This document shows positions 510 through 45,698 of a stretch of 64,000 nt of DNA, piece after piece. The notes beneath the pieces are model-generated. The model searched no databases. It was not told the DNA's origin and saw only the letters and a program-made list of their open reading frames with translations. Position numbers and translations under genes: made by a program. This DNA is from Perkinsus chesapeaki ATCC PRA-425 (taxonomy: Eukaryota; Protista; Perkinsozoa). The stretch lies in assembly GCA_013115145.1 (NCBI GenBank), contig JAAPAO010000081.1:1-64000 (forward strand), in the 5' to 3' direction. How positions within the stretch are numbered: the stretch's first letter is position 1; every line of letters starts with the position of its first letter.

Positions 510-3111
510 ATGGCCGACAATAACCCACTGTATCCCCCCGTCGTCCCTGCCTTTTACTTATGGCTTGCACTCTTCTGTGGCGTCGTAACATGTGCTACAT
601 CCTTCATGATCTTCACCCCCGCTGTCACTGACGTCTTCTCGGCTAATTTTCTGGTAAGCTCGGCGCATCTTCACCTTGCGTTGTGGAGAGATCACCTTTC
701 CTGTTCAGATACTTGGTGTTGTAATATCTATTATTACAGCCCAGCTCACTTTGGCGGACGCCTTCGAGTGGACCGCCAAGACCGTCATCGCTTCGTGGTA
801 CGGAGCTGGTCTAGGTTGCCTCGTGGTGGCTTTTGTAACCGCGGTAAATCACGGCAAGTACGATCCCTATATCGGGGTCCTGGTGGCGGTGCCCTTTGCT
901 ATTCTGGTTTGTCTAGCTGAACAGTCCAGTGTAACTTATTGCAAGCTGACCTCCCTCTACCGAGGCGATAAAGCTCTCCTGTTAATTCTAGTCGTTGTTG
1001 CTTTTGGGGGCGACGATCCTTACTGGGTCGCCCTCACCGCAGCACTGGCTTATACTATTGGTACTACCATACCTTTAATTGGAACTGTAATCCTTTGGGC
1101 CCTTAAACTCCTACCTCAGAATGGCCCCCCACCGATACCTATGTTCGCACATACGATAGCCAACTACTTCCAAGAGACCACTGCTGTTGCTCCTGTTGGT
1201 GAGGTCCAAGAGCAAGAGCTGGACTATCTCTGGAAGCAGGTCAACAAAGCCTATATGGTGGCAATACGCACACCAGACCTTCATCTTCGTGGCATTATAT
1301 TCTCTATGATATCTTCGCTCGGTACAGTGCGTCACTCACTGAAGTTTGCCTCGTACAGTGACGCTGCTGTTCAGTATCTTTGGGAGCCGCTCGACCACAC
1401 CTTAAATACTATTCGAGTCGAAGCGATTTGTCGACTACGTGCTGGCCGTGATGACCGATTTTTCAAAGCTGACTTGTGTGATCTTTCCCGAGATTTACGC
1501 CGCAAAGTTACCGAGGCGACGGCGGCCTATATGGAGGCAAAGTCGCTCGGGCAAACACCTTCGATACCCGACTCCGAGTTCGCCCGTTTCGGATTTGCCA
1601 CTCGGGAGATCGCACGCTTTACTGCCCTGCTGGGCGACTTTGTATTTAGAATTGAGAACCCTCCGTCTAGGATTCGTACAGGATGGGCGTTGGTTAAATT
1701 CAGGGTCAAAGAGTGGCTGAAGAAGCCTCTTTTCGAGCCTTTAAATCCGCCCACTCCTTGGCGGTTCCGTCTGGCCTTCCCTGTACGTTCGGGCCTTGGC
1801 GGCTGCATAGCTGCGTGGATCATCCTGGGCATTGGTGAGGCCTTGGGTGAGGTAAGGCTGTATGGTCTGTGGATGCTACTGCCCTGTGTGTTCTGCTTTC
1901 TACCTACTCCGGGTGCTTCCCTGGTTAAGGGCAGTAGGCGGCTTGGTGGAACCTTACTGGCTGGTCTGATAGCGGTACTGTGCGTTGTCATCCATCCATA
2001 TAACGACGCTGCCTTCTTCGTTGAACTATTTGTTATTTCCTTCGCTGGAAAGCTTATGAAGTGTCACCCCAAGATTGACTACTCTGGTTTGGTCTTCGCC
2101 TTCACATGGTCTATCGTGGGCTTGCTGGCCGGGATTGACGGTCACTTGGAGAAGCGCGAGATGGTGTTACGCTCTTTGTACAGAGCAGTTTTGACGCTGT
2201 GTGGCGTGCTCCTGGCAACACTGATATCCGCTTTGGTTATGCCGGTCTTCGCCTACGGTAGACTAACTCGCGCAACTGCCCGTTGCCTGCAGTTTACGGG
2301 TGACGCAGTGGCCGAGTCGGTAGAGAGAATCCAGACGGCGACGGCGGAGAACCGGCCAGAACGTGGGGGAGTGGACGAGCGCGTGGTGGGTATTTGCGAC
2401 GAGCTGATGAAGCATCATGAAGAGCGATGGTCTCAGATCACCGATGCTACTGTGGAGACAAAGCTCTTCACTTTGCTTCGGGGGTACTTCAGATCTGAGG
2501 AGCGTCGCGTGAATGCATCACACATTATAGCGGCGCAGCCTTTGCTGGACAGGTTGAATAGACGGACGATGGTCGTGGTGAGCGCGGCGGACTCCTTCCA
2601 TCCCAGCTGGAGAGTGAAGAGCCCCGAGCTGGTTGAGGTGCTGGAGTCTCTCAGTGTCTTCGCGGAGGATATGCGAACGGCTGCGGAGGAGTTGGCCAGT
2701 GTGGCGGTGAAACATGGTAATCGGTTCGGCCTGTGGGAGGCTCGGACGGGGAGGTTTGACGAGGCGGTATCGCTCCTGGGGAAGGTGGAGCGCCTGATGG
2801 GCAAGGCACGTAGGGATTTGCGGAACAGCAGCAGAGAAGCTGCTGGAGACGGCGACCTGCTAACTCAGTGCGTGGAGGAGGAGAGCGATCTGGACGACCT
2901 TTACTCGCTTGTGAGAGCGCTGGGAATCTTTGTGGAAGCCTGGAAGCAGGTGGAGTATATGATGTACTTCGGTTACACTAGAGGGTCCATGAACCCCTTT
3001 GACCTCCGAACTATGCAGAGCAAGACTATTGAGATGAGAAGGTTCTCCACTGGAGGAATCCCTCGCCTTCGAACGCACTCGTTTAACCCTACTGGCCCAG
3101 ATCAGGTTTGA
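510..3111 (+). CDS. ALMT/FUSC(ArAE)-like two-module membrane protein, array gene 1 (subfamily A); exons 510-653, 709-3111
   Basis: ATG510; GT..AG intron 654-708 joins in frame to the 811-aa ORF. Contains WMLLPCVFCFLPTPGASLVKGSRRLGGT, resembling the ALMT W-A-V-x-T-V-V-V-V...GATLxKGLNRxxGT segment, plus two hydrophobic TM clusters. Confidence 0.85.
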
Positions 3112-3663
3112 TCATGGTTGTTGCTGCTGTTGTTTATACTACTATTAGCTACTACATTCACCTCACCACAGAGACGTCTTTGACTATATTCTCACTACTA
3201 TATAACCTTTTGATGTATTAAGTGAGGCGATCTCGCGTTGTGTACAAGTCGCTAATAACAGTCTTTACTTAGCTTTTTATCGGCGTTCACTATGCGACCT
3301 TCACTGAAGGGAGGCTGGGGACTCTGAGGTACTATTTGATTGGGGACCGGGAAGGCTCTGGGGATGTCGCTGATTCTTACAGATGGTCTGCCGTGGCCAA
3401 TCTGCTGTCAGCCTCCTTCAACTATCTTGTGGTAGCTCGTTCTGGTAGGTAGGCTCCGATAGTGCTCCATTGCTTTGCGCGTAGTGTTTGCTGCAGTGAC
3501 ATCGCTTTCCGCGTCTGTTGCGATTCTAGTAACAACTTCCTACCAAACCTGGACATGAGAGGGTCTCAACCAGTGAAGTCTTGTGTTTCGATGCACCAAG
3601 ATGTGGTTGGTTTTCGAATTTGGGCATATTGGTTTACATAGTGTTTCTCTCGCCTCGTTGTTA

Positions 3664-6281
3664 ATGGCAAATAGCTGTTCGCCGCCTAGTATCTTATCTT
3701 ACAACTTCTACTCGGCCTTCTTCTCGGGAGTAGCAGCCTGTGCTTGTTTCTATGCTGTGATCCTTCCCGAAGGTCCCCTGACTGGCATCACGGTAATACC
3801 GTCTCTCATGCCGGTGGATGACCGTTGATCGCTCTGTCAGGTGGTAGCACCGCTTTGGGCAGGGATCGTTATGTTCGTAGACATCCCCACTACCGCCGAT
3901 TGGTGCCTTAAGACCATAACTGGCACCATCATCGGTGCCGCGGTGGGCCTTGCCGTGGCCTCGGTGGTGCATGCTTTAACAGAGGAGTATGAGCAGTATG
4001 TCGGAGTGATAGTGATGATTCCATTTGGAACGCTGCTGGTGGTTAGCGATGCCTCCACAGGCTGCAAGCTGTTCAGCGTTTACCGCTATGATGTTGCGCT
4101 GATCACATCCTATGTGATCGTCGCTTTCGGCCCCGGCAGCTACCTCCAGCGAGCCGTAGTTATGTCTCTTACGTTCCTGATAGGATCCGCGGTCCCTCTT
4201 GCGCTAGTGCTATTGTTGAATGTGCTGTGGAGGGTACCGCGTTCGACAGCGCCCCCACTGCCCGCGTTTGCAAATCGGGCTGCTAGTTTTTTTGAGACAC
4301 TCGCGACGCTGGCTATGAGCGGGGAAAGCCAGGCCGAGTGGCTGGACAAGGCCCGTCTGGACTTCGAGGAGGTTTGGCGGCAGGCCTCTGACACCGCTGC
4401 CAGCGATCCTGAGCTCCGCACGGTTATTTACCGTATGGGAGCGGAGCTGCTGGCTATGAGGAAGACTATTAGGGACGGCCTGTACAGCGAGGGGATCTTG
4501 GAGTTCATGTGGAGCTCGCTGTTGATGGATCTCACAGACCTCCGCATTGAAGTTGTCTCCTGGTTGAAGACGCTGACGAGGCCGAGAAGCCGGGATCCGA
4601 GGGAGGCTGAGGGCCCTAATTTGAAGGCCAGCGCGAGGAAGCTGGAGTCGCGGCTGGTGGAGAGATCGCTGGACTATAGCAGGTTGCAAGTTTCTGGGAA
4701 CGCTGGGATTGTTCCGGCCAATGACGTTGTTCGTTTTCAATACGCGATGTCATCTGTGACGAGGTTTGCGATGCTGACCCAAGAGTTTTATGAGATAGTA
4801 CGGAGCAAGGAGGAGGAATCGCAGGGCACGATGGTAGTATGGGAATAATTATGTGGCGCGCGGTCCTGTGTTTAGTGCTATTTGTACTTCAGAGACTAAA
4901 AGGCGTGCGGAAGTTCATCACCCAAACAGTCCGTTATTGGCGGGAGTGGTATGCGAGCCCGTGGTTTTCCAACGGTCCCTTTCGTGGGAAGCTATCCTCC
5001 AGATTGGCGTTTCCGATTCGCCTAGGCCTCTCCCTCACAGTGATGTGCCTTGTCATTATAGCTTGGGGCAGATCTGATCCCAAGATGGCCGGGCATGCAC
5101 TGTGGGCTGTGATTGCCATTATGCTTTGTTTTCTACCGACAGCGGGAGCATCTCTGGTGAAGGGGGTTCGGCGAATGGTCGGGACTCTGCTGGCCTCCGG
5201 CATCGCAATCGCTTGTGTGGCCATCCATCCACATAATATAGAGGCTTTCTTCCTAGAGCTATTTATTATTACTTTCGTTGGTAAGCTGGCCAGCTTCAAC
5301 TCCGACATAGGTTATGCTGGACTAGTTTTCAGCCTCACTTGGACGATCGTGGCCATCACCCCCGAGAGCTTCAACGGCGATGAGCCTGTTCAAGCCGTAT
5401 TGGTGGCAGCGGCGTGGCGAATGGCTCTCAACAGCATTGGTATTGTTGCGGCCACAGTGCTGTCCTGGATCGTCTTCCCGACATTTGCGACCACCAAGAT
5501 GGAGCGCTTGACTGCATGGGAGCTGGTCTCGCAGGCGAAGCTGGTAACGACGGCCTTGGAGCACCTTGTGGGCTTCGACATGCCCGAAGCGGAGGCAGAT
5601 GCGATCGGTACAGAGGACGGTTCAATGTTATACCTGTCAAGCGCCGAGCGCCACGCGCTAGATTTGGACGCCAAGGCGGAGGCGGTGATACTGGGGAAGA
5701 TGGGGGTGCTGGGCCTCGCGACGCAGAGAGTTCTTGACGTACAGGCTGATGTTGATCGTCTGGGCCGCAGTGCTATAGTGGCGAGGGTCGCTATTATGGA
5801 CTGCGCTACCAGCATTTCCGGGCCGGCCACTGAGGAGTTGTTGGAACCTCTCAAAGGGCATCTGTCTCGCATGGTGATGACACTGAAGGACGCGGTGTCT
5901 CGGGTGGTGCTGTTCATCGTCGACAGCAGCAGTATTATGCCGGACAACGTAAATGCGCCGACGCCTATTCAGGACCCTGGAGTGCAGATGCAACGGACTT
6001 ACGATGCGTTCGTTAAGCTGCGAGAAAGGCTCATTATAGTTCCACTTGACGGCAACTCGGACCTCATGGCCAATGTCCTCAGCTCTGGCGGGATCCCCTT
6101 CTATCACGCCCTTTATACGCTAACGCTCTTTATAGAGGATTGGCGGGAGGTGGAGTGCTGCCTTCGAGGGGTGGACAGTCTGCAGGGGGCTGGTCTGGTG
6201 AATGGCATCCAGGATGATGGTGATGCTGAAGAGGGCGCTCAATGCCGAGAGTCGGTCGCGAAAATCGCGCCGCCTTGTTGA
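3664..6281 (+). CDS. ALMT/FUSC-like protein, array gene 2; exons 3664-3792, 3841-4833, 4893-6281
   Basis: Two phase-0 GT-AG introns join the ORFs at 3841 and 4839 in frame; motif WAVIAIMLCFLPTAGASLVKGVRRMVGT. Confidence 0.85.
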
Positions 6282-6396
6282 TTTTTTCGTTTAATGTTGT
6301 TGCATTTGCTCTCTCGACTACATGGTCGAAGTTTCCTACCTCTTCATCCTTGTGTTCGACCTGTTCCAGTTGCTCTGGTAGTTGTATTGTTGGTAT

Positions 6397-9235
6397 ATGC
6401 TTGACCAGCTACCATCCATACCTATATACAAGCTGCTAACAGCCATGTACACGGGCCTACTGGCCTGTCTCTGCTCATGGGCAGTCTTCATCATGCCTGG
6501 CGGCCGCGGAGCTAACATTACGGTAGTAGTAGAGGGCAATGGTGGTTGAGAGATCTAGCAGTGCGAGTCTTTGAGTTATCGATGTTCCTTTTTGAAATAG
6601 AACTCAGTGGAATGCAGCTTCCATTTGGGGAGAAATTAATATCGAAGCCTGAATGTTAAGCAAGCTTGTGGGAGATGGATTCATTTACACTGCAAAATTA
6701 CACCGGCCCTTAGCGGCTGAAGCAACCAGTATCTTGCTGGTTGCATTTCCTCGGAGCACTACTGCCTCCCATCTTCACCATTAATTTCTCTGCTTCTTCA
6801 ACTCAGGTCCTCGCCCCAGTATGGGCTCTCATCACTGCCTTCCTCAACATCAGTGCTAACTACGACCAATCCCTTCGTTCCCTCGTCGGTGCAGCACTAG
6901 GCCTGTTTAACACAGAGCTAGTGGCCCTCCTGGTCACTGTATGCTCCACGACGGGCTACAACGCTTGGATCGGTGTCATCGTCAGCTTTCCTCTCACGTT
7001 CCTCCTGGCCATTGGCGACCCTGCCAGCGGCAGCAAGCTGTGCAACGTGTTCCGATCGGATGTGGCGATGGAGTGCATGTACATCCCTCTGGCATTCCCC
7101 AACGGCCAGCCCTTCTATCACGGCCTCCTCACTTCGGGGGCGTTCGCGGTTGGCTCAGCCGAGACCTTTATTGCAACTACCATTCTTAACGCATTCAATT
7201 TGTTACCTAGATCCTCGGTGCCGGCCATCCCAGCGTTCGCTCGGGCTGCTGCCGACTACTTCGAGACGCTGGCGACATATGTTACTAGCGGCACTGACCA
7301 CCTCAACTTCATCGACCGTCAGAGGGCACAGTTTGACGTGGCGTGGCGAGCTGCAGCGAAGGCGGCTCCCAACCCCAAGATACGCAGCATTATCTACCAG
7401 ATGTCCTCGGAACTCATCGCCCTTCGCCAGACCCTCCGTGATGGCGGCTACAGTCAGAGCATTCTCCACTATATATGGCACCCGCTGGTCCCCGATTTGG
7501 TGGACTTGCGGCTCGAGGTGGTATATTGGCTGAGGCAGACTGCGGTGCCCCTGAAGCCTGGCGATGAGATTGACGCGACGGAGCTGCTGGCGATGGCCGA
7601 GCAGGTCCAGGGGCGGCTTACCGACGAGTCTCTCTTGTACAGCAAGGCGGTTGTGTCGGGAGAATCCGATTTGTCCCCGGCGAACGACATTGTCCGTTTC
7701 CAGTTCGCGTTCTCGTTGATAGCTCACTTTGCTGTGTTGGCTGATGAGTTCCACACACTGGTGAGAGACTATGAGATGAGTCTGCCTGAGAAGACCAAGA
7801 GGGTAAGCTGGACCAGCCGTTTCGCGGAACACAGTGGAGTGTTTTCTCTGTTCAGTTTGACTGGTGGGGCCGACTTACACGTTATCTCTCCGAATGCAAG
7901 AAGTATTGGATACATTGGTGGCATCTCCCCTTCTGGGCCTACGGCAATATGACCCTCAGGCAGAGGCTTACCCATCCCCTTAGACTGTCCCTTTCTATTA
8001 CCCTCTTTGCCTTGCCCCTTATCGCCTGGGCCCAGGGCGAGCCTGTTGTGGAGTCGTACGGCTTCTGGGGCCTAGTACCCTTGCTGTTCTGTCTCCTACC
8101 AACTCCAGGAGCATCATTGGTGAAGGGAACGAAGCGTATCATCGGCACCCTCCTGGCAGCTGTAACTGCCATCATTTGTGTGTCGGCTAATCCACGTAAC
8201 ATCCCCGCCTACGAGGTGGAGATGTTCGTGGTGGTGACCCTCGGCAAGCTCGCCTCGCTGTATTCCAGCATCGACTATGCTGGCACAGTGTTCGCCTTCA
8301 CATGGATGATCATCGGGATTATTCCGAGTTTGAATGTCACCTTCGACAGGACCGAGATGATCTACTGGTCTCTGTGGCGTGTAGCGCTGACTCTCATTGG
8401 CACCTTCGGCGGTACCCTCATTACTTGCTTCATCTTTCCCACATTCGCCATGACCAAGCTCGACAAGGAGTCGGCCCACGAGCTGCTTACTCAGGCGGAC
8501 ATGGTGGCCAGCTCTATAGAGGAGCTCTGCCGCATAGAGAAGGGCCCCGCGGTCAATCCCGACAATCGGCGTTATGAAGTTGGCGACGCGTTCTGGAAAT
8601 CCTGCGATACCAGAACTGGCCTCACCCCGGAAGCCAGAGCGGAAGCGCTGGTGCTTGGGAAGACCTCTTTCGTGGACGATACTACTCGGGCGGTGATCAA
8701 GATCCAAGGCAGCATCAGCTGCATGGGAAGGAGCGCTCTGGTGGCCCACGCTACCATCGCCGACTGCACCCGCTCCATTTCGGAGCCGGCTATCTCGCTG
8801 GTCTTGGACCCCCTCCGAGAGCAGCTTTCAAGGCTTTCTGCTGCCATAAGGGATTCTTCCTCAAAAGTGGCGTTGCAGATTCTCGATGACCACAGCTCGA
8901 AGAAAATGATCGTTGATGGCGATTTAGTGGGCAGTCAAGTCAACGTGGAGATGCAAAACATGGTCGACCACTTTGTCGAGATCAGGAAGAATCTTTTATC
9001 AGGCGAGGACGCCAACCTCGACGGTTTCACCAAGGCCATCCGGGCCGGCCTGTACACACTGTACCACAGCTTCTACACGCTGAGGCTGTTCACTGATGAC
9101 TGGGTGAAGATCGAGACGGTTATCTTGGGCTATAAAGAGCTCAGTCCAAAACGGACGAGAGCGTTCAGTGGTGCACCACAGGAGATGGTCAACCGGGCCA
9201 GGGCCCACATCAAGTCCGTGGCGGTTAAGGCCTGA
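6397..9235 (+). CDS. ALMT/FUSC-like protein, array gene 3 (subfamily B); exons 6397-6522, 6807-7802, 7856-9235
   Basis: Phase-0 introns 6523-6806 and 7803-7855 give one continuous frame; motif FWGLVPLLFCLLPTPGASLVKGTKRIIGT. Confidence 0.85.
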
Positions 9236-9621: not shown

Positions 9622-9681
9622 CTGATCTATTGTGAATCATATATATAATATAATATCGGTAGATGATCCACAATAGATCAG
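9622..9681. repeat. 19-bp inverted repeat (1 mismatch) around a 22-nt AT-rich loop
   Basis: CTGATCTATTGTGAATCAT (9622-9640) and ATGATCCACAATAGATCAG (9663-9681). Confidence 0.8.
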
Positions 9682-9753
9682 AATATAACGGAAAATATAG
9701 ACTATACCGAATCTATTCTATCCATTAGAAGATCTTTATAAAAACGTTCCAAC

Positions 9754-12575
9754 ATGCCCAAAGTCGCTCCGGACATTCTTCCAAGCTTCACGTCATTTCA
9801 GCTCTTGAACGCAGCATACGGAAGTCTCGTCGCATGCCTGGTCGCCTCTGGACAGTTTCTTCCGTGGTTTGGGGACCGGTTCAGTATCCAGCTCTTCGTA
9901 AGGGGGAGGCGAAGTGACCACGTATAGAAGCTTGTCGTACTGAGGCCCCTTATAGGAACGAGTTTGGACGCTGGACTAGTGCAGTTTCATGTTCGTGGAA
10001 TTTCCGCGGTATGTGTAGATAACTGAGAAGCTCATAGAAAATATGTTACTTGTGGAAAAAGTAGCATCAGGCCTTCCTTTGGGAACTAAATATATATGAT
10101 GTTCCTCTGCGACCGCCTTACTTCGACAAAGCATACAATCTTTCCTCCTCAGGCACTTTCGACAGCATGGGCACTGGCCTATACAAGTCTGGACTATTCC
10201 TTTGCCGTTGACTTTGCTTGGAAGACCTACATAGGAGCTTGCATGGGAGCGGCTCTCGGTGCCATATTGGTTTACGTCACTGCGCCCCTAAATGGCGGCG
10301 TCTACAGCCCCATGTGGGCATCGCTGTTCGGACTTCCCTTCTGTTTTATCCTCGCTATGGGGTGCCAGGGCAAAGCCAGCGAGGCGTACTCTTACACTAG
10401 TGCGCTTCTCAGAATGTACAGCATACTAGCCTTTGGCGAAGGCGAGCCGTACAACAAGGCCCTCTTTATTATTGTTGTCGGATTTTGCTCGGACATGGTT
10501 CCGATGCTTGTCGTCTCGGTCCTCAACTGCTTCGGCATGCTCCCCTTAAAGGCGCTGCCTCCTCTTCCGCGTTTCGAGCAAGCTCTGAAGAGCTACCTTG
10601 AGCTTTCGGTTTTCTATTTGGTCGACGCGAGGAAACACAAGAGATATCTGGACAGGAAAAGGGACGACCTAGTGGAAGCGTTTCGAGCAGTCTTAAAGGC
10701 GAATGTGCCGAAGCCGTTGAAACTGGACGCGTCGAACGTCGTTGGATTGCTGCACGGCTTTCATGCCTCCGCCACGACCAGGGCCTTCGGACGGCAGGCC
10801 ATCGAGCATTTTTGGGCACCCTTGCGCGGCGATATAGGGAAGCTGGCCTCACTTATGGGCATGGTGCTGACGGAGCCATTTGACGAGGAACTCACCAGAC
10901 GGCTGAGAGATTCGAGTGAACGACTTCTGCGGCAAGTGAGGGTGTCTACGGTCGAGTACGGTCGGAAGGTGGCCGATGCGAAGTGCCCACTTTTCTCTAC
11001 TAGAGAGTTGGCGCGGATAGAATTAGCTCTCCTTATCGTGCCGCGGTGCAGCCTGATAGTAGCTGATTACGTGGAGAAGAAACATGTGCAAGAATTGGTC
11101 TGTCGCGGGCATGTGGCTTGCACGGTGAGACCTCATTTTCATTCTGTCTCTTCTACACGCATCCTCTTCAGTTTCCTATCCCTACATTTCTCCGAGACTT
11201 TAAAGCTTGGATCCGCAAGCCGTGGTATCCTGCCAGTCTCTCTCGATGGGAGCGTGTTCGATATCCTCTTCGGTTCACCATATGTCTGCAGGCTGTGGTC
11301 TGGCTAGCAGTTGGCTTGGCCAGTCGCTTCGAGATTGTGGCCGCGGAAGGCTGGTGGATCATCGTCCCCGCGATTCTCTGTTCCTTCGACGCCTTCGGCC
11401 TGACAGTCAGCAAAGGCGGTCGAAGAATTCTGGGTATCTTCCTGGGCGGTGTATTGGCGCTGATACCCCTTGCCATTCACCCAGGCCAAAGGGCGCCCTT
11501 TTTGCTGGAGCTCTTCATTGTGGGAGCAATCTCTAAGCTGGTTACTGATCTGCCCTCGATAGACTACACCGGTTTGCAGACGGGCGTTACCTTTATCATA
11601 GTCGGCTTTGCTGATGGTATCAATCCTGAGGAGAGCGAAGCGAAGCGGTATTTGTTGGCTGGGCTTCGGCTCCTGTGTAACAGCGGTGGACTTATCCTTT
11701 TTATGCTGATGACACTATTGACGAGACCGCCGTACTCGGGGGAGCTCCTGGCGAAGGCGACTTCTAGAGAGATCGACAGTATCTCCGGTTACGTCACCTC
11801 CATTGTTCGGGCGCTCCGTGGGCGGCCCGATGTAGCCTTCCCTGACAGGGTAGAGAAAGGGTTGACCTTGATTGATTTGGACGGAGCACGAATCGCCAAG
11901 ATTCCTTCGGTCAGAGCGGAAGCCAGGGCCCTGAGGGTGATAGGCATTTCTACAACTCGCTGTGGGGTCGGCTCTGCTAGGCTGGTAGCGGCCCAGGCAT
12001 CGGTGCCCGGCTTACTGCACGGGGTTGCCATGGTCTATACGGAGCTTAGCAACTGCGATTTGAAAATGGGTGTTGCGGCAGGCAAGCTCCTTTTGGAACC
12101 GGTCCAGAGCCTCCTGGAGGACTTCGAGGATTCACTCACCCTGGCCGCCATAGAGATCAACAAGGCTCTCACTAGTAACGCTGGCAGCGGTCAGGCTATA
12201 GCGGCCACACGGGAGGCACTGGACGCATATCTTCGCCTGGACGCGGCGTTCCAGAGCGTCAGGGCGGATCTTCTATATCGGCGAACTTGGGCCACTTCGG
12301 GGGATGTGATGGCATCAACCAAGCTAGCGGAGGTTGTCTCTGGTGGCGGCGGCGTCAGCTTGCATGTGGCACTGTATTCTCTGGGATTTTTCGTGGAAGA
12401 ATGGGTGCAGTTCGCCAGCCTTCTGTTAGGGGCCGACATTAGGTTCCCGAACGAGCCTAGCGCAGACGATTCCACAGACACAAGTCCGTGTGATCGCCAG
12501 TCGACCATCACCACCCTCTCCCGGTGCCTATCGGAAGGGCAGGGTATCGTTCACCGCAAAGTTAGTGCCCGATAA
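9754..12575 (+). CDS. ALMT/FUSC-like protein, array gene 4 (subfamily C); exons 9754-9897, 10153-11124, 11172-12575
   Basis: In-frame splicing at positions homologous to the other paralogs; motif WWIIVPAILCSFDAFGLTVSKGGRRILG. Confidence 0.83.
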
Positions 12576-34203: not shown

Positions 34204-36923
34204 ATGACAACGAAGTCTCGTGGCGCTTCCGTGCCATACCGCCTCCCGCAGTATCCTCGATACCGACTGCAGGTTGCGGCGTATGCCGGCTTTCTAGCGT
34301 GTATCTGCGCAGTTCCGCAATTCTTGCCTACACTCCAGCGAACACTGCAGCAACATCTTTATGTGAGTAGCAGCGGCCGTCCCTACCGATTTTGTTGCAG
34401 CAGCAATGGATTGGTTGGCTTCGGCTTCGTACGGTTCTCTATGCTCCGGCCTCTGTGGTGATTGTTCAACTTAGCTGTTATTGCATTTCAGGTGATGGCC
34501 ATCATGTATACGTATGGAGGAGCAACGCTTAACTCGAAGGCCTTCAAGGTTGGCCCTTGGCGACTTCTGATAACTTCTTGTCTTGGATCCTCTGTTGGTT
34601 ATGCTATCGTTCTTCTCGAAACTGCTATGGGCGGCGGTGTCTACAACCACTTCTTTGGTGTTTTGCTTGCATTCCCTTTTATACTATTGTCCAGCATGGT
34701 CCAAGCAACATCAAAGTGCAAACTGGCTGAATTCTATTCCTATATCAATGGCAACTTAATGCTCATATCAGTCGTCGCTTTCTCCGGTACCGAGGCTCTC
34801 AAGTGTATGTACTCTGCCATTTTCGCAGGAGTTCTGTCCTTTGTTGTATTGTTCGTTTGCACGGGGACACTCGATCTTCTTGGTTTGCTGCCACTTGCAG
34901 CTCCCGAGCCCCTATCGGCATTCGAACACGCTGCGGCCACCAGTTTCCAATCGAACGTCAGTTACATTCTGGATGGAGACCTGCATCTTCGTGAACTCAC
35001 AGAGCAGCGACAACAATTGGTCAGTGCTCGTAAAGCAGCATTAGCCAGCGTCCCCGATGCTGACCTGCGGCTCTGTATCTTCCGAATGACGAGTACGCTC
35101 TATGGCCTACGGAGAGCTGCACGATTTGAGCCTTTCAGTGAAGCCGCAGTGGTACATTTGTGGGAGCCGATGCAGATGGAGTTGGGAAGATTGGTTACCA
35201 AAGTTACCGCACTACTAAAGCATGAGGTGGAAGTGGAAGATATTCCCGATTTGAAGGCTGCTGCACGTGATGCTCTTATTAAAATAAAAAAGATTAGCAT
35301 CGAGTATACTCGGGCAGTTGCTGATCAGAAGTCCGTTGTGATTTCTGCTAGAGAGATGGCTCGAGTAGAGTTTGCCATGTTAGCCATACCAAGATTTGCA
35401 ATACTCGTTGATCGTTACTTCAAGCTGAAGGGTAGTCGCGGTGCTCCAAAGCCATCCTTCTGGCGCTATGTAATAACCTTGTAAATGTCACTGTTACTTT
35501 CCCATTTCTCGAGTAGGTACCCATATCCCCTTCAATGAGACACCCCATTGCTTTCATTAAGCGCCCAATGTGGCCACCGGGAACGTCTTTACGAGATAAG
35601 TTAGCATTTCCTTTGAGGCTGGCTATCTCGATCACTATTGTGTCCGAAGCCGCTCTAGCAATTGGCCAAGTGTATCCTATTGTTCTCACTGAAGGCTTGT
35701 GGTTTGCACTACCTGTGGTAACATGCTTCCTTCCCACCGTCGGATGGACCATAGGGAAGGGCTCAAGGCGTATGCTTGGTGTTTTGATTGGCGGTGCTCT
35801 TGCTATGCTGATTGTTTACGTCAACTCGATGAATATTCCTGCAGTGATGGTGGAGCTCTTCCTCGTCGCTTCTGTGGGGAAGTTTTTTACCCAAGACCCG
35901 AGAATTGGTTACCTTGGGTTCCAAATTGTCACAACATTCACTGTTGTTGGCGTCTGCAATGCTCTCGATCCCGTACTGGATGCCGATGCTCGCATAACTC
36001 TGGCCTGGCTTCGAATGCTATTAACAGTCACGGGGTTATGCACCGCTATCTTTCTATCATTGATATCGTTTCCGTCCTTCTGCGGTCGCCGTCTGGCGTT
36101 GCAAACCAGCAAAGAGCTTCTCTGCGCATCTAACGCAGTATCAGCGCTAGTCGAGGGAATCATCGCCAGGAAGCCCGACGGCTCGACGGACCCAGAAGAG
36201 CACGGTCTGCCTACTGTGGTCGAAACCGGTTTGAGTCTGTTAAAGGAAGACAGCGCTCGTCTAGCAGAGAAAGCGTGGTTCGCCGAGGAAGCCGTGTATC
36301 TCGCGCTGGTCCGTGGCAGCTCAACGCGCTGCTCCGTCCCTGCCAAGTGTCTTGCTGCCGCTCAAGATGATGTTGCGAGGCTCAGCAGAAGTGCTGTCGT
36401 TGTCGAACAAGTCTTCTGGAGCTGCGACAAGAAGATGAGTCCAGCAACCGATAGACTGCTTCTTGATCCTATTAGACCTTTGTTGGACGATCTTGCAAAA
36501 CATCTGCAACGGTCGGCTCAAGAGTTAGATCGTACAATGCGCAGCATCGTGGACCCAGAGTCCGCAGTACGCTGGGCTGAAGAAACCTTGGAGTCAATGC
36601 TGTATTTGTATGCTACATTTGATGAGAACAGAACAAAGCTTCTTTTCAAACGTACCTGGGCAGCCGAAGGTGAAGTAACTGACTCTACCCATATGATAGA
36701 AGTTATGAGCAGTGGTGGCGGTGTCGGCCTTCATGAAGCTATCCATGCTATAAACGCATTTATAGAAGATTGGGTTACGGTTGTTAACAAGCTTTTCGCG
36801 TGCCAGCTGAGCGTTCCTAACTCCGCTGGTGAAGAAAGTGTTATGTCTTTCGGAAGTCTTGACACCAGTACAGGCTCTAATGACAGTGGTATTCGTAGGA
36901 GAGCTGAAACGTGTTCATACTGA
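34204..36923 (+). CDS. ALMT/FUSC-like protein, array gene 12 (subfamily D); exons 34204-34362, 34492-35469, 35517-36923
   Basis: In-frame splicing; exon 1 is nearly identical to exon 1 of gene 11. Confidence 0.85.
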
Positions 36924-37355
36924 GTCTCCTGGCAGTATTCTGAGATGCCTCTCAGTGGTACGTATTTTCCCTTCGCTTCGCCGTGTGGGCTCCATCACCA
37001 AGCCACACGGTATACTCGCTGTTTAGTTGCTTTATGTGGAAGACCATTCATACACTGTCGAATTCCTTCTTTCCGTATTTACTTGTATTGTGTTTGACCT
37101 TACAGGCCTTTTCTTCGTCCATCTATGTCGACAGCCCTTTAAGCTCGCCTCCGTACTCGCTGAAAAGTCATTTCAGTGGGCCCAGCATGTCGGTTTAAAC
37201 AACCATCGCTAGCACGGTATTGAGACAAATAATGCGTTCTGATACCCTTTCAAATTCCTCTTGCGCAGCGCTCGTACAAAATAGATAGGATGTACCAGAT
37301 TGTTTCCCTTGTCTTCCTCCAGCGTATTTTCCTGCTGCTCAGTTCGCATATATGT

Positions 37356-39997
37356 ATGTCCAGAAAGCCTGAGAGCTTCTCTGCGGCTTGCCGTCTCCCT
37401 CAGTATTCTCAATACCGAGTCAAGCTGGCGGTGTATGCCGGATTTGTTGCATGTATTTGTGCAGTTCCGCAATTTCTACCAACCCTTCAGAAGCTCTTAC
37501 TACAGCATCTTTACGTAAGACTCTCATCAAAGGCGTTCATTACTAACCTTTATGATTTCCTTTCAGGTGGTTGGGCTCTTATATGGGGTCATAGCAGCCT
37601 CGCTCGATGCGAAGACTTTCATGAATATGCCATGGCGTCTCTTGCTGGGCGTCAGCACTGGTGCATCCGTCGGCTATGCCATTGTCCTCCTCGAAACAGC
37701 TATGGGCGGTGGAACATATAACCATTTCCTCGGTGTTCTCATAGCATTCCCCTTTCTTCTATTGTCTAGCTTGGCCCAAGCGACATCTAGAAACAAATTT
37801 TCTCAGCTGTTTTCCTATATAAGTTGCAATTTGATGATGGTCTCTGTGGTAGCCTTCTCTGCAACAGAGCCTCGGAAGGGACTGTTTTCTGCTATATTTG
37901 CAGGGAGCATCTCGTTCGTAGTTCCCTTGACGCTGGCGGGGACTCTCAACATATTGGGCTTACTCCCACGTACAGCCCCCGAGCCGCTGCCAACATTTGA
38001 GAACTCTGCTGCAGAGTATTTCAAATCCAACGCGTGCTATATTCTGGACGGTGAAATGCATCAGCGAGAACTCGATGAGCAACGAAAGCAGCTTATCAGC
38101 TCACGGAAAGCGGCCCTCGCCAATGTTACTGACGGTGATATGCGGCTCTGTATCTTCCGAATGACGAGTACTCTTTATGGTCTACGGAGAGCTGCACGAT
38201 ATGAGCCTTTCAGTGAAGCCGCAGTGGTACATTTATGGGAGCCGATGCAGATGGAGTTGGGAAGATTGGTTACCAAAGTTACCGCACTACTGAAGCATGA
38301 GGTGGAAGTGGAAGACATTCCCGATTTAAAGGAAGCTGCACGTGATGCTCTCATTAAGATAAAAAAGATAAGCATCGACTATACTCGGGCAGTTGCTGAT
38401 CAGAAGTCCGTTGTGATTTCTGCTAGAGAGATGGCTCGAGTAGAGTTTGCCATGTTAGCCATACCAAGATTTGCTATACTCGTTGATCGTTACTTCAATC
38501 TAAAAGAGAAGCATAAAACACCCAAACCTTCCATTTGGCAATATGTAGCAATTCGTAGTGGAGTGTACTTCTTTCCAACTCCTCTCTCAGGTTCCCCTCT
38601 CTCCGCCTCTACGGCATCCAATAGACTTCATTAAAAAGCCGGTCTGGCCGGCTGGCACGTCCCTGCACGACAAACTAGTGTTCCCTTTACGACTAGCCAT
38701 ATCTGTAGCTGTCGTTGCGGAAGCTACCCTAGCTGTCGGCGAAGTTTATCCTATACTCCTCACTGAGGGTTTATGGGTCTGCTTACCGGTTCTCACTTGC
38801 CTTCTGCCTACTGTCGGGTGGACCATAGGAAAAGGTCTCAGGCGTATGCTTGGCGTGTTGCTGGGCGGCTCCCTTGCTATACTTATCGTCTATATAAACC
38901 CATTAAATATCCCAGCCGTTGAAGTGGAGCTCTTTGTGGTCGCCTCCATGGGAAAGTTCTTCACTCAAGATCCCAGAATTGGGTATCTAGGCTTTCAAAC
39001 GATGGCATCGTTCAGTGTGGTGGGCGTATCTAATGCTCTCGATCCTACACTCGATGGTGAAGCTCGACTGCATCTAGCGTTGCTACGAATGCTGTTCACT
39101 CTTGTTGGTCTTTGTATAGCTATATTTCTCTCCTTGCTCACTTTCCCTTCGTTTTGTGGCCGGCGGTTAGCCATCCAAACGAGTGAGGAACTCCTCTGTG
39201 CTTCTGGCGCCGTTTCGGCGTTAGTGAGGGGGATGGTAGCTAGGAGTCCAGATGGTTCGAAAAGCCCTGAAGACCGAGATCTGCCTACCGTAGTCGAAAC
39301 TGGTATGAGCCTCTTGAAGGAAGACAATGCCCGGCTTGCAGAACAACCGTGGTTCAAAGAGGAGGCTGTATACCTCGGGTTGGTGCACGCTTCCTGCACA
39401 CGGTGCGCTGTAGATGCCAAGTGCTTGGGTTGTGCGCAGGATGACATCACCAGGCTGAGCAGAAGTGCCGTGGTTGTGAGTCAAGTCTTTTGGAGCTGCG
39501 ACAAGAGGATGAGCTCCTCCACTGACCGTTTGCTGCTTGATCCGATTCGTCCATTGCTCTCAGATCTTGCAGGACAGCTCGATCAATCAGCCTTGGCCCT
39601 CGACCGCGCTTTGAGGAGCAAAGGCGGAATTAAGGAGGCTGTTAACGCTGCAGCCGACACACTAGAATCAATGCTATATTTGTATGCTACATTCGATGAG
39701 AACAGAACAAAGCTTCTCTTTTCACGTACCTGGGCAGCCGAAGGTGAAGTAACTGACTCTACCCATATGATAGAAGTTATGAGCAGTGGTGGCGGTGTCG
39801 GCCTTCATGAAGCTATCCATGCTATAAACGCGTTCATAGAAGATTGGGTTACGGTTGTTAATGCACTTCTTGGATGTCAACTTAGTTTGCCCCACGCTCC
39901 TATCGAAGAGAGTGCTACATCGCTTGCAAGTTTAGACACTACCACTGGCTCTGACGACGGGAGTGTCCGAAGACGTGCTGAAACTTGCGCTTACTGA
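37356..39997 (+). CDS. ALMT/FUSC-like protein, array gene 13 (subfamily D); exons 37356-37514, 37567-38544, 38591-39997
   Basis: In-frame splicing; exon 2 is 978 nt, as in genes 10-12 and 14. Confidence 0.85.
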
Positions 39998-40285
39998 ATT
40001 GTCCATTACGTAACTGTATGTTTGCGTCCCGTCACATCCTTTGATACAAAGGTTTTATCACACTTCTGCTCTGCTTGGTCTTCCCTTTGGTTGTAATACT
40101 TCTGATTATACTAGGGTTTATTTGCTCTTGCGTCGCTTGTCTCCACCGTGGAGTTGTCTCTGTTTGGTTCGCTCTGCGCCACGTAAGCTAACAACTCTGT
40201 GACCAAAAATGGTTTCCTGGCTTCTTGCTTCAGAATGTGAGCTTGCTTTTTCTCGTCTGCAGATTTCTACGTTGTTTTTTGAATA

Positions 40286-43024
40286 ATGGGGAATAAACAA
40301 CCACCCGAGGATGTTCCGCGGTTCACCCGTTTCAGCCTTCTGAACGCGCTCTATGCTGGCTGCATGGCTGGCCTTATGACAGGGCCCATGTTCATTCCGA
40401 CGTTCACGCAGTTGTTCGACTCGAGAATAATGGTACGTTTAGGGAAGCCTGATTCTCTGTTCGGTGTCATTTAGCATAGAGAAATATAGTATTTAGCTTA
40501 ATCTCGTTTCGTACGAGCGACTCTTCGTGCTAAGGGAATCTCACAGAGTTCTCCGTGAATGCCCACTGCTAGTGTTTCAGGCTCTCGGTACAATATGGGC
40601 AGTCCGCTGCAGCTCCCTCGACTTTCAATCCGCCTGCTCAGCATCCTGGACCGCCGTTTTTGGTTCCTTGGTCGCCGCTGCGGTGATCGCTGTCGTCATA
40701 CCCTTCGCTACTGCGATATGTGGCGGAAGCATCAATCTCTACGTTTGCTCCATTGTGATGATGCCTTTTTGTTTCGCTGCCTCTCTGGCCGCTTCGTCAA
40801 CCAAGTGCAAGCTCGCTCAGCTTTACGACTATAAAACCACTCTGACAGTAGCGTATTTGGTAATTTTCTTCGGTACCAGCCCTCTGGATGTGAGTGTGGT
40901 ATCGGTTATCCTTGTGGGTGCCTGGTCAACTCTGATCCCGCTTCTGATAACATCGCTACTCAATCTCTTTGGTGCGCTGCCGAGAAGTGCCCTTCCACCT
41001 ATGACAGTGTTTGAACGCTCTGCTGCATCCTACTTGGAGACCGGCATCATGTTTATCCTAGAAGGGGAGCTCCACCAGGACGAGCTAGAGCGTAAACGTG
41101 ATAAGCTCAGTGAAGCTCGGAAAACACTGCTGCGGTCCACAACAAGCCCTGACCTGAAGTTCTGTATATTTCGCATGTCGAGCTTGTTGTACACGCTGAG
41201 ACGCTCGTCCAGGTTCACACCGCTCAACAAAGCGGCTGTGGAATACCTGTGGGTGCATGTCGAGCGAGAGATTTTCGAGATGGTTTCCACGATGGTCGTA
41301 ATTCTCCGACATGAGGGTGACCAGGCAGATCTTGCTCGGCTGCGTGCAGGAATATCGGTGGTTAGCGATAAGATTCGCCACACAATCATCGACTATACTA
41401 GGGGAGTTGCCAAAGGGCAATTCGATCGTCTTCCAGTCGATGAGCTTATCAGGATGGAGCATGTGATGTTATGTATCACTCGGCTTGCGAAAGTGGTGAC
41501 GGATTATTGCGACATCAAGTCCAGCATCACAGTGAGCGGGTTCTCCATAAAGAAATATGTAAGTTGCTCCACATCGGAATACTATTTCCAATCTTTGTTA
41601 TTCAGTTACCTGTCCCTCCACTTGCGTGGCATTTAAGGGCCTGGCTAAAAGAGCCAATGTACCCTCTACATTCCACCTGGTTCGAGCGGTTTTGGTTCCC
41701 TGCCCGCCTCACCTTGTCTATAACTGTGGCCACGCTGGGTGTCTTGGGTGCCGCGGAGGAATACCCGGTGCTCCTAGTGGAAGGTTTCTGGGCATTGATG
41801 CCCGTAATTAGTTGCTTTCTCCCCACAGTTGGATCAACCCTGAGTACGGCTGTTAGGCGTTTTCTTGGAGTTATGGTTGGCGGCGGGCTCGCTATGATCG
41901 CTGTGTCGGTCCACCCTCTGAACGTAGCTGCATTCATCATCGACGTCTTCTTGGTAGCGGCCGTGACACGATTCCTTGTTGTTAGTTCTAGGATTGGTTA
42001 TGCTGCAATGCAGATGTTCATCACCTTCATTGTAGTCGGTGTCGTTAGTGGTATAGACCCTGACCTCTCAACAGGCACCAGAGTCTTAATGGCTGCCGAG
42101 AGGATGCTCTATACGCTCATTGGTGTGGCTGCCACTATAGTGCTCTCCATGTTGACTATCCCAGCCTTCATCTGCCGCCAACTTGCTCACAAAACTGCCG
42201 ATGAGCTTCGAACATCCGCTGCGGTTCTGATACATGGTATTTCCACGCTTGTAGAATGCGACGATGACGAGTCGCCTGGGGGAAGCACTGGAATTAGTGA
42301 AGACTCGGTTGTCAGTACCGGTACCGCCATTTTTGAGAAGGACACTGCGAGGGCTGCTGCGCTAGATGGCGCTCGCGAAGAGAGTACTCTGTTGCACTTG
42401 GTCGGTGTCAATGCTTCCAGATGCGGAATTAATTCGTCGAATATTCTTCTTGCTCAAAAGCAAGTAATGAGGGTGTCTCGTTGTGCCATGTCCGCCTGTA
42501 TTAGTCTGGATCGGTGCAGGCATCTGATTGGCGTAACTGCGCGTAAACAGCTTCTCAACCCTGCACGAGAGTCTCTGGATGGTGTAGCGTGTGCGATGTT
42601 GAAATCGTCCTTGGAGCTCGAGACAATGCTGCGAAAGCACGGCGATGCAGCGCGAGCAATCAACACCACCGAGGAGCTCGTGGAAGCCACGGCAAACGCT
42701 TTCAGACATTTTGAACGGCTTCACGAGAGGTTGTTATTCAGCAAGACATGGGCAGTCGATGGTGACGTTATGGATTCCACAAAGCTAGTCGAAGCATTAT
42801 CGAGCGGCGGAGGCGTAGGCCTCCACGAAGCGCTGTACGCTATCATCGCGTTTGTCGGCGAGTGGCTCGGTGTTGTGAATACCCTGCTCGGCTGTGGTCT
42901 CAGTGTATCTTTGTTGCGTGGTTCGGAAACCGAGATGAAGGTTTTGAAGGTTCCTACACCCATTGTACGCGGTCGAGCTCGTGCCAAATCAGAGCAGCTT
43001 GAAACTAGTATCCACGACATGTGA
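40286..43024 (+). CDS. ALMT/FUSC-like protein, array gene 14 (subfamily C-like); exons 40286-40432, 40581-41558, 41606-43024
   Basis: Phase-0 introns 40433-40580 and 41559-41605; motif FWALMPVISCFLPTVGSTLSTAVRRFLG. Confidence 0.83.
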
Positions 43025-43328
43025 GCTCTGATTGGAAGGCAAATCTTGATTTTACTTGATTGCGGCTTCAACGCGCTAGTTGCTCGCGTATTTGTCAGTC
43101 TTATTCGGCATATTTGTTAACTCTGGCTTTAACACCATTCTTGTGTTGTTCCTGTAGGGGCGGGGGTCGAGCGTCCATTCAAGGATATCATCCGACGGTT
43201 TCGCTCGACTGTGTACTTGTTTCTTCATACTGCGGAGTCACCCGCCGGGACACCACTGTATTCCCATTCCAGGCTGAATCACGGCCAATCTAGGTAAGCT
43301 TGTGAGCTGTTCAGCTTTTTGTATCACT

Positions 43329-45698
43329 ATGCACATTCCTCTTCTCCATCCTCTGAACGCCCCATCGCTCAAAAAGGGGCACGGCAATGCTGATTGGTGG
43401 GGATTGACTCCCCGATCTATAGCAGAGTTACAGACAGCTATTTTCACTGGCGTGACGGTCTGTTTAACATCTACTACGGTTTTTAATTCAACAATATCGT
43501 TTATCTTTCCACCCCAGTTCATGGTAAGCCCTCCCACGCCTCCGTGATGTCGTTTATACTGCTTTTCTCAGATTCTCGGTTTAGCCGGCGCATTGATAGT
43601 TTCGTATCTCGAGATGCAACTTGCCGTCGAGTGGTCTTTAAAGACTACCATCGCGTCCTGGCTCGGCTGTGCCTGTGGGTGTCTAATCGTTTATGTGGTT
43701 CCTTTAATCAACCAAGGAGAATATAATCCTTATTTCGGTCTCCTACTTGCTGTACCATTCTCGTTCCTCCTATCATTGGCAGACCAAGCGGGTGAAGTCT
43801 ACTGTAAGCTCAGTTCGGTCTATCGGGGTGACAAGGCCCTCCTTCTTTTAATCATTCCAGTGGTTTTCGGTGGTGATGATCCTTACTGGTCCGCGATAAC
43901 GGCAGCCATTGGGTACACTGTTGGCTCAGCCATACCTCTTTTGGGGACAAGTTTTCTGTGGTCCTTGGGTGTACTACCGGACACACGAGCAGAGTCGCTT
44001 AGAGCACTCAGTCTCAATTTGGCCGACTATTTTGACGAGGTTGCCTCGCTGCGAAAGGACCGAGACCACCAAGTAGCAGTGTTGCGCCGAATGTGGAGCG
44101 ACCTTTACAAAGCCAGTACCGAAGCTGCGACGTCCACCAGCGACTTGAAGCTACGTGGACTGATCTGGTCGATGGTCGCTTGTTTGTCCACTGTGAGACG
44201 GTCCTCCCGGCGCCATGCCTGCGACCCTGTTGTATTGGAGAGGCTTTGGCTGCCATTTGAAGGATCCGTCGTATCGCTTCGCCAGAAGGTCATATGCACC
44301 CTCAGAATGTGGGAGACATTCGACGAGTCGGATACAAAGATAGCTGATGCTGCTGGTGAACTGCTAGCTTCTGTAGAGCATTTTATTACTGATTGCGAAG
44401 TACCATCTGGACCGGAGTTGACCAATTTTGAATTCACCGTCAATGAGATGGTAAAGTTTTCTCTACTTGCCCAGGAATTCCTCATCAGAGTGAAAGGTCC
44501 ACAGGAGGGCTCGTGCATGCACAAGGTTGTCGATTGGTTGCGACAGCCGCTCTTTGCGCCAGCCAGTCCTGGGACCACCTGGAGAGTGCGGTTTGCTTAC
44601 CCTCTAAGAGCTGCGGTTACTGTTCCCCTGGTCGCCTTATTCATTTTAATTGGTGGGGAGCACTTTGACGTACTAGCTCACTATGGCTTATGGATGATAC
44701 TACCCTGTGTTTTCTGCTTCCTTCCTACCCCTGGTGCGTCTATCCGGAAAGGACTGAGGCGTATTCTGGGCACTGTTGTAGCATCGGTGCTGGCGGTTGC
44801 ATGTGTCTGCTTGCATCCCAATAATGATGGCATCTTTCTCTGTGAGCTTTTTTTCTTCTCTGTCATCGCCAAGTTGATGTTCTTTCATGACACACTGCAA
44901 TATTCTGGATTAGTATTTGGCTTCACCTGGATTATTGTCGGGCTCGGTCCCGGGATTGACACCTCTTTGCCGGTCGGCAGCAAGGTCGTTCGTGCCGTAC
45001 ATCGGATGGATATGACTGTTGCCGGCGTCATTCTTTCTATTCTACTGGCCTCTCTGATTTTCCCTATATTTGCCAACAAGCGTTTGCGTAGAGCGACAGC
45101 GCGCTCGCTGGAGCTTGTTTCTAATTCGGTTGCTAATGCATGCGAGTCCCTGGTCCACAAGACACCGTGGAATCGCGAGGCCCTCAGTGAGGACGTGCTT
45201 GATGCGGCCGTGTTCTTAGCGAAGAGCTACGCTGACCGTAATGCTCAGATTGCTGATGCAAGGGCTGAATGTCAGGCATTGCGTTATCTGTCTCCGACCA
45301 GGCATCACGAGCTGGCGCATGTGGTGGCTGCTCAGCACCTGCTGGACCGATTAACCAGGCAAGCTCTGGCTGTTATTTCCGCCGTCACTACATGCTTGGC
45401 AACGATACCAGTTGATGGCTGCGGCCTACCCAAGCCTGCCGAACAAGACTTACTTTTGACTGCTGCCGTGATCCGCCGAAGAGCTGGCCTCCTGGTGGCA
45501 GGTGTCAGAATAAGGAAGTTCAAGATCACTGATGTTACCGAGTCTGTGATGCGCTCCATCGACTGTCTTGAGTCGAATATTCGGAACTGCAATGCCGTTG
45601 AACACTACGGCATGGACTGCTTGGTACACGCCCTACAGGACTTCGCCGAGGTGTGGGAGGAAGTTGAGCGGATGGTTGCCAAGGCGAAGGATAGCTAA
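43329..45698 (+). CDS. ALMT/FUSC-like protein, array gene 15 (subfamily A); exons ~43329-43523, 43572-45698
   Basis: Intron 43524-43571. Shares YRGDKALLL, GGDDPYW and WMILPCVFCFLPTPGAS with gene 1. The start codon is uncertain. Confidence 0.8.

Follow-up and report, generated by a model that had tools for sequence, protein, structure and literature searches.

The genome of Perkinsus chesapeaki ATCC PRA-425 carries an array of 15 collinear paralogues, all on the + strand and spaced approximately 3 kb apart, which occupies positions 510-45698 of the 64,000-nucleotide stretch of DNA analysed here (contig JAAPAO010000081.1 of assembly GCA_013115145.1, positions 1 to 64,000; hereafter the window). 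Perkinsus species are protist parasites of bivalves such as oysters and clams. Most database relatives of the first gene of the array carry, from at least one source, the label "Aluminum-activated malate transporter 1", which hides the two-module, FUSC-type nature of these proteins. The present analysis corrects that label: the Perkinsus proteins are a mislabelled, Perkinsus-centred clade of the known FUSC/ArAE architecture, present in 15 tandem copies, and are not a new kind of channel. Their N-terminal half (module 1) has diverged strongly, their C-terminal half (module 2) is canonical, and both halves adopt the fold of the plant ALMT protomer.

Gene array and exon structure

Identity between paralogues of different subfamilies is in the order of 20-40% (22-38%), and the array resolves into groups comprising genes 1 and 15; gene 2 with genes 3, 7, 8, and 9; genes 10-13 with gene 6; and genes 4, 5, and 14. 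The ATG of gene 1 was found at position 510, where the original prediction for this locus, made from the sequence alone, had placed the start of the array. A small upstream exon in every gene encodes the first transmembrane (TM) helix of module 1 (motif L..A.YTG..AC) and is followed in all copies by a short intron. Beyond this exon, both modules lie within one open reading frame (ORF) in genes 1, 8, and 15, whereas in the remaining 12 of the 15 genes module 1 is encoded by one frame (ORF A) and module 2 by another (ORF B), the two being in different frames or separated by stops. The sequences analysed were the exons by reference, genes 1, 8, and 15, which have no intron between the modules, and one database protein.

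That protein, P. chesapeaki FOL47_010456 (P0009, 773 aa), is the product of gene 15, since its N-terminal 65 residues and its remainder match the window exactly at 43329-43523 and 43572-45695 across a single 48-nt intron. Gene 1 has its nearest relatives in P. olseni, at 82%, in P. chesapeaki, at 58%, and in P. marinus, at 56%; database models are 773-850 aa long.

Module 2, the canonical half

The signature K-G-x-(R/K)-R-x-x-G, said in the original prediction to be kept in module 2 of nearly all copies, is present in 13 of the 15 genes, with the variants KTLRR in gene 5 and TAVRR in gene 14 that had also been named. Module 2 scores 33-70 bits against the Pfam ALMT family (PF11744; cut-off 20.6) in all copies tested, with a match that spans only about profile positions 9-225 of 471, and 29-55 bits against FUSC_2 (PF13515; cut-off 25.6) in all proteins scanned except one; the distant relative P0053 reaches 23.9 bits, below that cut-off. 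The full-length FUSC profile (PF04632) gives approximately 25 bits with the window genes, in module 2 only and under its cut-off of 30.9, which among the distant relatives is exceeded by P0045 only (33.7 bits). A profile built from module 2 matches the sequences of the solved GmALMT12, ALMT9, and ALMT1 structures at E values from 1e-15 to 8e-21.

In ALMT homodimers, the pore is lined by K109, R113, R158, R187, and R198 (PMC8890709). Residues of module 2 that align with pore residues of GmALMT12 are conserved across the array: the K of KGxRR, opposite K109, is kept in 14 of the 15 genes, and the second R of that motif (opposite R113), a K or R in TM4 (opposite R158), a Tyr (opposite Y169), and the Arg of TM6 (opposite R198) are kept in all 15. 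The glutamate of the WEP motif of ALMTs also has a counterpart in module 2, an invariant Glu. Of the two halves, module 2 alone keeps the ALMT pore residues.

Module 1, the diverged half

Module 1 is a second ALMT-type module that is detectably homologous to module 2, a conclusion carried by three independent lines of evidence. Searches of Pfam at the usual thresholds, of NCBIfam, and of the sequences of solved structures gave no match to it, and it has no significant ALMT sequence match; its only recurrent weak Pfam match is FUSC_2, seen below threshold in 9 of 20 sequences (best E 0.005). An AlphaFold2 (AF2) model of module 1 folded alone (FOL47_010456 residues 1-392; predicted local distance difference test score, pLDDT, 76.7) was compared with the PDB using Foldseek, and ALMT chains alone stand at the top (E 2e-5 to 1e-3, TM-score 0.48-0.57, alignments of approximately 390-400 columns), with all other matches at a TM-score of 0.24 or less. 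When the model was aligned with 48,161 representative chains using VIA-align, AtALMT1 was found at Z 22.3 (352 residues, root-mean-square deviation 4.2), followed by ALMT9 (Z 19.4) and GmALMT12 (Z 18.8); the next best matches, at Z 14, are to helical domains of the PhoU-like type and extend over the cytosolic part only. Module 1 thus lies on the ALMT fold, the point on which the original prediction had made itself open to refutation.

The internal repeat is also visible in sequence when deep profiles are compared. A module-1 profile of 41 sequences aligned by hhalign with a module-2 profile of 24 sequences gives a probability of 93.6% (E 2.1e-7) over 337 columns, starting at TM1 and running through the whole helical domain. 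In it, the single K or R of module 1 (SL-R-SIAG, SL-K-TTIA) falls opposite the first of the two adjacent arginines of module 2 (RR), as had been proposed.

The motifs described for module 1 are present in the array: WKTYIGACMGA occurs in gene 4, SLRSIAGALIG in gene 7 with close variants in genes 3, 8, and 9, and acidic TM residues of the TELIA/TELVA/SELIG and RSDVAMEAMY types mark subfamily B, TELIA and RSDVAMEAMY being found in genes 7 and 9. The proposal that module 1 has lost the canonical signature or retains a single Arg needs qualification, in that the second Arg of TM3 is gone everywhere but a K or R stays at the TM3 position in 12 of the 15 genes. The TM6 Arg is gone in most copies, and an invariant Lys follows TM4. 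The TM domain of module 1 has no net charge or a negative one in subfamilies A and B and a slightly positive one elsewhere; in module 2 the net charge is positive or neutral in all 15 genes. Two further correspondences were considered and set aside. The LWEPL of module 1 was rejected as the ALMT WEP fingerprint, the alignments placing it opposite a downstream L-x-x-P-L-R motif, and the invariant Lys of the module-1 "CKL" is not claimed as the equivalent of the module-2 "GKL" Lys (GmALMT12 R158), which hhalign leaves unaligned with it.

A search of 1.84 billion representative proteins with a profile of module 1, made because the family scans had left this module open, returned only 56 proteins at E ≤0.001. 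The named proteins among them are from Perkinsus, and the distant matches that were looked up derive from ENA or Logan assemblies, with one cluster from the MMETSP marine-protist transcriptomes. In the long matches (700-930 aa), the module-1 match is N-terminal in nearly all, and a C-terminal ALMT or FUSC_2 match was found in every one scanned. None of the proteins of a mostly plant cluster with two FUSC_2/ALMT modules was found by this profile. Module 1 is thus a narrow, protist-restricted sequence family within a constant two-module architecture.

Fold of the whole chain

The AF2 model of full-length FOL47_010456, computed from an input alignment of 35 rows of paralogues and orthologues, has a pLDDT of 84.4 and a predicted TM-score (pTM) of 0.80. 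In this model, TM helices at residues 31-196 are followed by a six-helix cytosolic domain of approximately 170 aa (203-373), a linker helix (380-389), a second set of TM helices (402-560), and a second six-helix cytosolic domain of approximately 205 aa (566-769), which is the alternation of TM bundles and helical regions that had been read from the sequence. When the full-length model was compared with the PDB using Foldseek, the only significant matches were ALMT1, ALMT9, and ALMT12 chains; in VIA-align the ALMT chains fall on residues 380-773 at Z 15-16. The pLDDT of the first two TM helices of module 1 rises from approximately 60-67 when the module is folded alone to 87-95 in the full chain, which suggests, though indirectly, that these helices pack closely against module 2.

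Both cytosolic helical domains (residues 203-373 and 566-769; window positions ~43983-44495 and ~45072-45683) are also matched by PhoU-like domains, at Z 13-15.5 over 173-200 aligned residues, nearly as strongly as by the ALMT cytosolic domain, and both resemble the soluble part of the Clostridium difficile membrane protein 3KMI.

A proposed single-chain asymmetric pore and its alternatives

The interpretation that we favour, at a probability of roughly 0.7, is that each gene encodes a two-module ALMT/FUSC chain of ~770-850 aa that is the fused, asymmetric counterpart of the ALMT homodimer, with an anion pathway at the interface of its TM domains. Each module consists of a TM domain of six helices and, C-terminal to it, a PhoU-like helical domain in the cytosol. 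We infer a packing like that of the ALMT dimer, in which the two TM domains, one from each module, would enclose a single pore from opposite sides and the two PhoU-like domains would pair below it, so that one chain would probably suffice as the equivalent of an ALMT dimer. Such a pore would carry one set of conduction and gating residues, that of module 2, rather than two. Module 1, an ancient copy that has diverged strongly, is without most of the pore residues and differs between the paralogue subfamilies. The substrate would most likely be a small organic or inorganic anion, moved through a channel or an efflux pathway.

Several observations weigh against this interpretation. The division into a charged and an uncharged half is a tendency and not a rule, as module 1 retains some basic residues. 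A shallow profile comparison, 15 against 15 window paralogues, found no repeat (0.6% probability), and detection of the repeat needed the distant relatives from the exhaustive profile search to be added to the profiles. The introns that would lie between the two modules are predicted from reading frames and homology. Finally, bacterial relatives of the AaeB type have been described not as channels but as subunits of efflux pumps that act together with partner proteins, which makes channel function in Perkinsus an extrapolation from the plant ALMTs and from Rv2571c of Mycobacterium tuberculosis.

The competing explanation that survives best, which we nevertheless consider unlikely, makes module 1 a mere scaffold that stands in for the second protomer, has no role in selectivity, and diverges neutrally between paralogues. 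It would account for the loss of the second TM3 Arg and of the TM6 Arg from most module-1 copies, for the variation of the equivalent positions by subfamily (K, R, N or T), and for the presence of only 7 invariant columns in module 1 against 18 in module 2. Neutral divergence is nonetheless difficult to reconcile with a module that is not decaying, given that mean pairwise identity is nearly equal in the two halves (31.3% in module 1 and 33.0% in module 2) and that purifying selection on module 1 equals that on module 2, the ratio of nonsynonymous to synonymous substitution (dN/dS) among the youngest paralogues with unsaturated dS being 0.14-0.23 and 0.13-0.18, respectively. The charged TM residues of module 1 are, moreover, conserved inside each subfamily, as exemplified by the acidic residues of subfamily B.

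A somewhat less probable alternative accepts the same architecture but sees in it a carrier or efflux pump of the AaeB/FusC/MdtO type, or a dimer of pseudo-dimers, so that one chain would not form an ALMT-like pore. The full-length model does match models of the bacterial FUSC family, the annotation of AaeB is that of an efflux pump subunit for aromatic carboxylic acids whose partner is a fusion protein, and TCDB places the family among carriers (2.A.85; PMC5047901). The ALMT channel fold of each module (Z 19-22), the retention of the ALMT pore-lining residues in module 2, and the lack of partner genes in the array argue for a pore instead, as does Rv2571c, a FUSC protein with one module that is now read as a channel formed by a homodimer (bioRxiv 10.64898/2026.03.10.710584).

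The fused asymmetric pore also presupposes that the modules of the split genes reach the protein as one chain. Genes 12-14 have, between the modules, a predicted phase-0 intron (GT..AG, 46-47 nt) that restores the frame at the point where homology resumes; its boundaries were fixed in these three of the 12 split genes, and in all twelve the modules appear, from sequence, to be separated by a short GT..AG intron of approximately 46-47 nt. The notion that ORF A and ORF B are instead separate genes whose products form a non-covalent heterodimer draws on the frame shifts and stops that part the modules in 12 of the 15 genes, but is very improbable, since three paralogues read through the junction as continuous ORFs, the intron restores the frame in genes 12-14, ORF B has no upstream region of its own and directly follows or overlaps ORF A, and the annotated P. 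olseni, P. marinus, and P. chesapeaki orthologues, together with the relatives from protist transcriptomes, are two-module proteins of 700-940 aa. The absence of the genes 12-14 intron from genes 1, 8, and 15 suggests intron loss or cDNA-mediated gene conversion in three separate subfamilies.

The favoured single-chain pore can be extended to a further proposal, which is speculative and which we hold to be doubtful, that the 15 paralogues constitute a series of asymmetric pores in which an invariant module 2 conducts and gates while a variable module 1 sets selectivity. The basis offered for such tuning is the residue at the module-1 TM3 position, which may be K, R, N or T, together with three buried acidic residues in subfamily B. 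The fusion itself would perhaps have arisen independently of that in bacteria, because module 1 resembles its own module 2 and FUSC_2 and not the N-terminal module of YccS. If the proposal were true, the parasite would have separate copies for different organic anions, or even for solutes that are not anions.

Significance of the array and its annotation

What remains of interest beyond a corrected label is the extent to which module 1 has diverged and the clean, complementary pattern of conservation between the halves. The array offers 15 natural variants of the degenerate half, and since neither Foldseek nor sequence searches found a two-module member among solved structures, fused asymmetric proteins of this kind could reveal which of the duplicated pore arginines matter. 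A large family of putative organic-anion pathways in Perkinsus may also bear on metabolite exchange or pH control.

The coordinates of the 15 genes are collected in Table 1. The gene 15 protein is public (FOL47_010456), whereas no identical entry was returned for gene 1 (676-3111) from public protein collections, where the best match is the 82% relative from P. olseni; the public annotation of P. chesapeaki may thus lack several members of the array or model them wrongly. In the P. olseni region JABANN010000265.1, 690-14722, the orthologue of gene 1 adjoins genes for a PKD_channel and a DUF8302 protein. After the orthologue come a gene of 464 aa without a Pfam match and then 8 kb without called genes. 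No comparable annotated array lies within 22 kb of that locus, and the array in P. olseni may be smaller or unannotated.

Table 1. Genes of the P. chesapeaki array and their parts, in window coordinates.
Feature	Position	Strand	Structure and motifs
Gene 1	510-3111	+	Exon 1 510 to ~656 (TM1 of module 1); ORF 676-3111 encodes the rest of module 1 and module 2
Gene 1 motifs	1927-1950; 775-795		Module-2 KGSRRLGG; module-1 counterpart AKTVIAS; no intron between modules
Gene 2	3664-6281	+	Exon 1 start approximate; ORF A 3841-4848; ORF B 4839-6281; KGVRRMVG 5160-5183
Gene 3 (subfamily B)	6397-9235	+	ORF A 6741-7952; LRSLVGA 6873-6893; acidic TM residues
Gene 3, module 2	7949-9235	+	ORF B; KGTKRIIG 8123-8146
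Gene 4	9754-12575	+	ATG 9754; ORF A 10096-11307 (WKTYIGA 10219-10239); ORF B 11118-12575
Gene 5	12873-15752	+	ORF A 13231-14508; ORF B 14349-15752; variant KTLRRLLG 14595-14618
Gene 6	15959-18778	+	ORF A 16315-17325; ORF B 17354-18778
Gene 7 (subfamily B)	18899-21613	+	ORF A 19047-20267 (SLRSIAGALIG, TELIA, RSDVAMEAMY); ORF B 20264-21613
Gene 8 (subfamily B)	21842-24407	+	Exon 1 start approximate; ORF 22020-24407 encodes both modules
Gene 9 (subfamily B)	24656-27271	+	ORF A 24852-25856; ORF B 25976-27271
Gene 10 (subfamily C)	28114-30778	+	ORF A 28125-29357; ORF B 29393-30778; module-1 TM3 position Asn
Gene 11 (subfamily C)	31138-33800	+	ORF A 31354-32412; ORF B 32409-33800
Gene 12 (subfamily C)	34204-36923	+	ORF A 34462-35484; ORF B 35535-36923; inferred intron 35470-35516
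Gene 13 (subfamily C)	37356-39997	+	ORF A 37552-38634; ORF B 38558-39997; inferred intron 38545-38590
Gene 14	40286-43024	+	ATG 40286; ORF A 40527-41636; ORF B 41471-43024; inferred intron 41559-41605
Gene 14, module-2 motif	41846-41869	+	Variant TAVRRFLG
Gene 15 (FOL47_010456, P0009, 773 aa)	43329-45698	+	Exon 1 43329-43523; exon 2 43572-45698
Gene 15 modules	44748-44762; 43641-43643		Module 1, residues 1 to ~392; module 2, residues 393-773; KGLRR (K458-R462) 44748-44762; module-1 K89 43641-43643

Comparison with known systems

The plant ALMTs, represented by AtALMT1 (7VOJ/7VQ3), AtALMT9 (8HIW), and GmALMT12/QUAC1 (7W6K), share their protomer fold with each Perkinsus module (Z 15-16 for module 2 and 19-22 for module 1). 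They differ in carrying one module per chain and in assembling as symmetric homodimers (PMC8890709), whereas the Perkinsus chains carry two fused modules, with the pore residues in one of them, and so fall outside the one-module-per-chain definition of an ALMT. A bacterial protein with the same fold is Rv2571c (AKGC) of M. tuberculosis, a single-module FUSC-domain protein that, unlike the Perkinsus chains, is predicted to be a homodimer. A recent preprint reads it as a homodimeric, ALMT-like channel for the anion alpha-ketoglutarate that lacks the TM3 Arg and depends on the TM6 Arg (bioRxiv 10.64898/2026.03.10.710584), and pores of the ALMT fold thus tolerate the loss of some arginines.

Internal duplication is described for ArAE proteins in TCDB. 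That database groups the ALMTs with bacterial, yeast, and protozoan members (PMC5047901), and ArAE proteins of 12 TM segments and ~750 aa have been listed (PMC3924187). The two-module FUSC/ArAE proteins of bacteria (YccS/YhfK, AaeB, and MdtO; TC 2.A.85), described as efflux pump subunits with periplasmic partners, have the same arrangement as the Perkinsus proteins, namely two repeats of six TM helices and a helical domain in a single chain, here of 635-740 aa. Among solved PDB chains, Foldseek and sequence searches turned up no two-module member of the superfamily, and literature searches returned no explicit account of FUSC proteins as ALMT-like pseudo-dimers and nothing on Perkinsus malate transporters.

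The relationship to individual bacterial proteins varies along the chain. E. coli YccS (717 aa; L003:4731-6884) has PF12805 in its N-terminal module and FUSC_2 in its C-terminal module, and so shares the polarity of the Perkinsus proteins, a diverged N-terminal module preceding a FUSC_2 module. Positions 406-590 of the Perkinsus profile, in module 2, align collinearly by hhalign with the C-terminal module of YccS (391-559) at 93.2% probability (E 3.1e-7). The stretches that match the NCBIfam YccS/YhfK models (TIGR01666/TIGR01667), at positions 384-586 of 705, agree with this alignment, with scores of approximately 20 bits that do not reach the cut-off of ~468. Module 1 shows no similarity to the N-terminal module of YccS by hhalign (0.7% probability), and no match to PF12805 even at E values up to 10. 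In E. coli AaeB (655 aa; L001:2222-4189), Pfam FUSC extends from end to end and FUSC_2 is found in the N-terminal module only, so that the FUSC_2-recognisable half is N-terminal, unlike that of the Perkinsus proteins, which is C-terminal. Whole-protein collinear homology to AaeB was sought and not found, the only match being a weak one between module 2 and the AaeB N-terminal module (E 0.024). The opposite FUSC_2 polarities of AaeB and YccS hint that degeneration of one half has happened more than once in the FUSC superfamily.

When the full-length model was searched by shape against the ESM Atlas, five bacterial FUSC-family clusters (635-737 aa) were found that match from end to end over 600-660 residues, with TM-scores of 0.64-0.68 by query and 0.71-0.76 by match, both sides of these comparisons being predicted models. 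The best full-length match is a eukaryotic cluster with FUSC_2, ALMT, and FUSC domains (TM-score 0.81 by query, 717 residues across 1-773), which has 425 members, is commonest in Streptophyta, and is represented by a protein of 986 aa, longer than the Perkinsus proteins but built from the same Pfam families. The original prediction of a fused pseudo-dimer therefore stands as a description of a single chain with two ALMT-fold halves, one canonical and one degenerate, and falls as a novel architecture: the novelty that it implied for the fused, two-half layout is contradicted by the same layout and asymmetry in AaeB and YccS, where they are standard, and in the eukaryotic cluster. A fused pseudo-dimer with diverging halves is already familiar in the FUSC superfamily and among other channels and, as the ESM Atlas matches and the domain layouts of AaeB and YccS together indicate, the asymmetric two-module chain is the normal state of FUSC/ArAE proteins.

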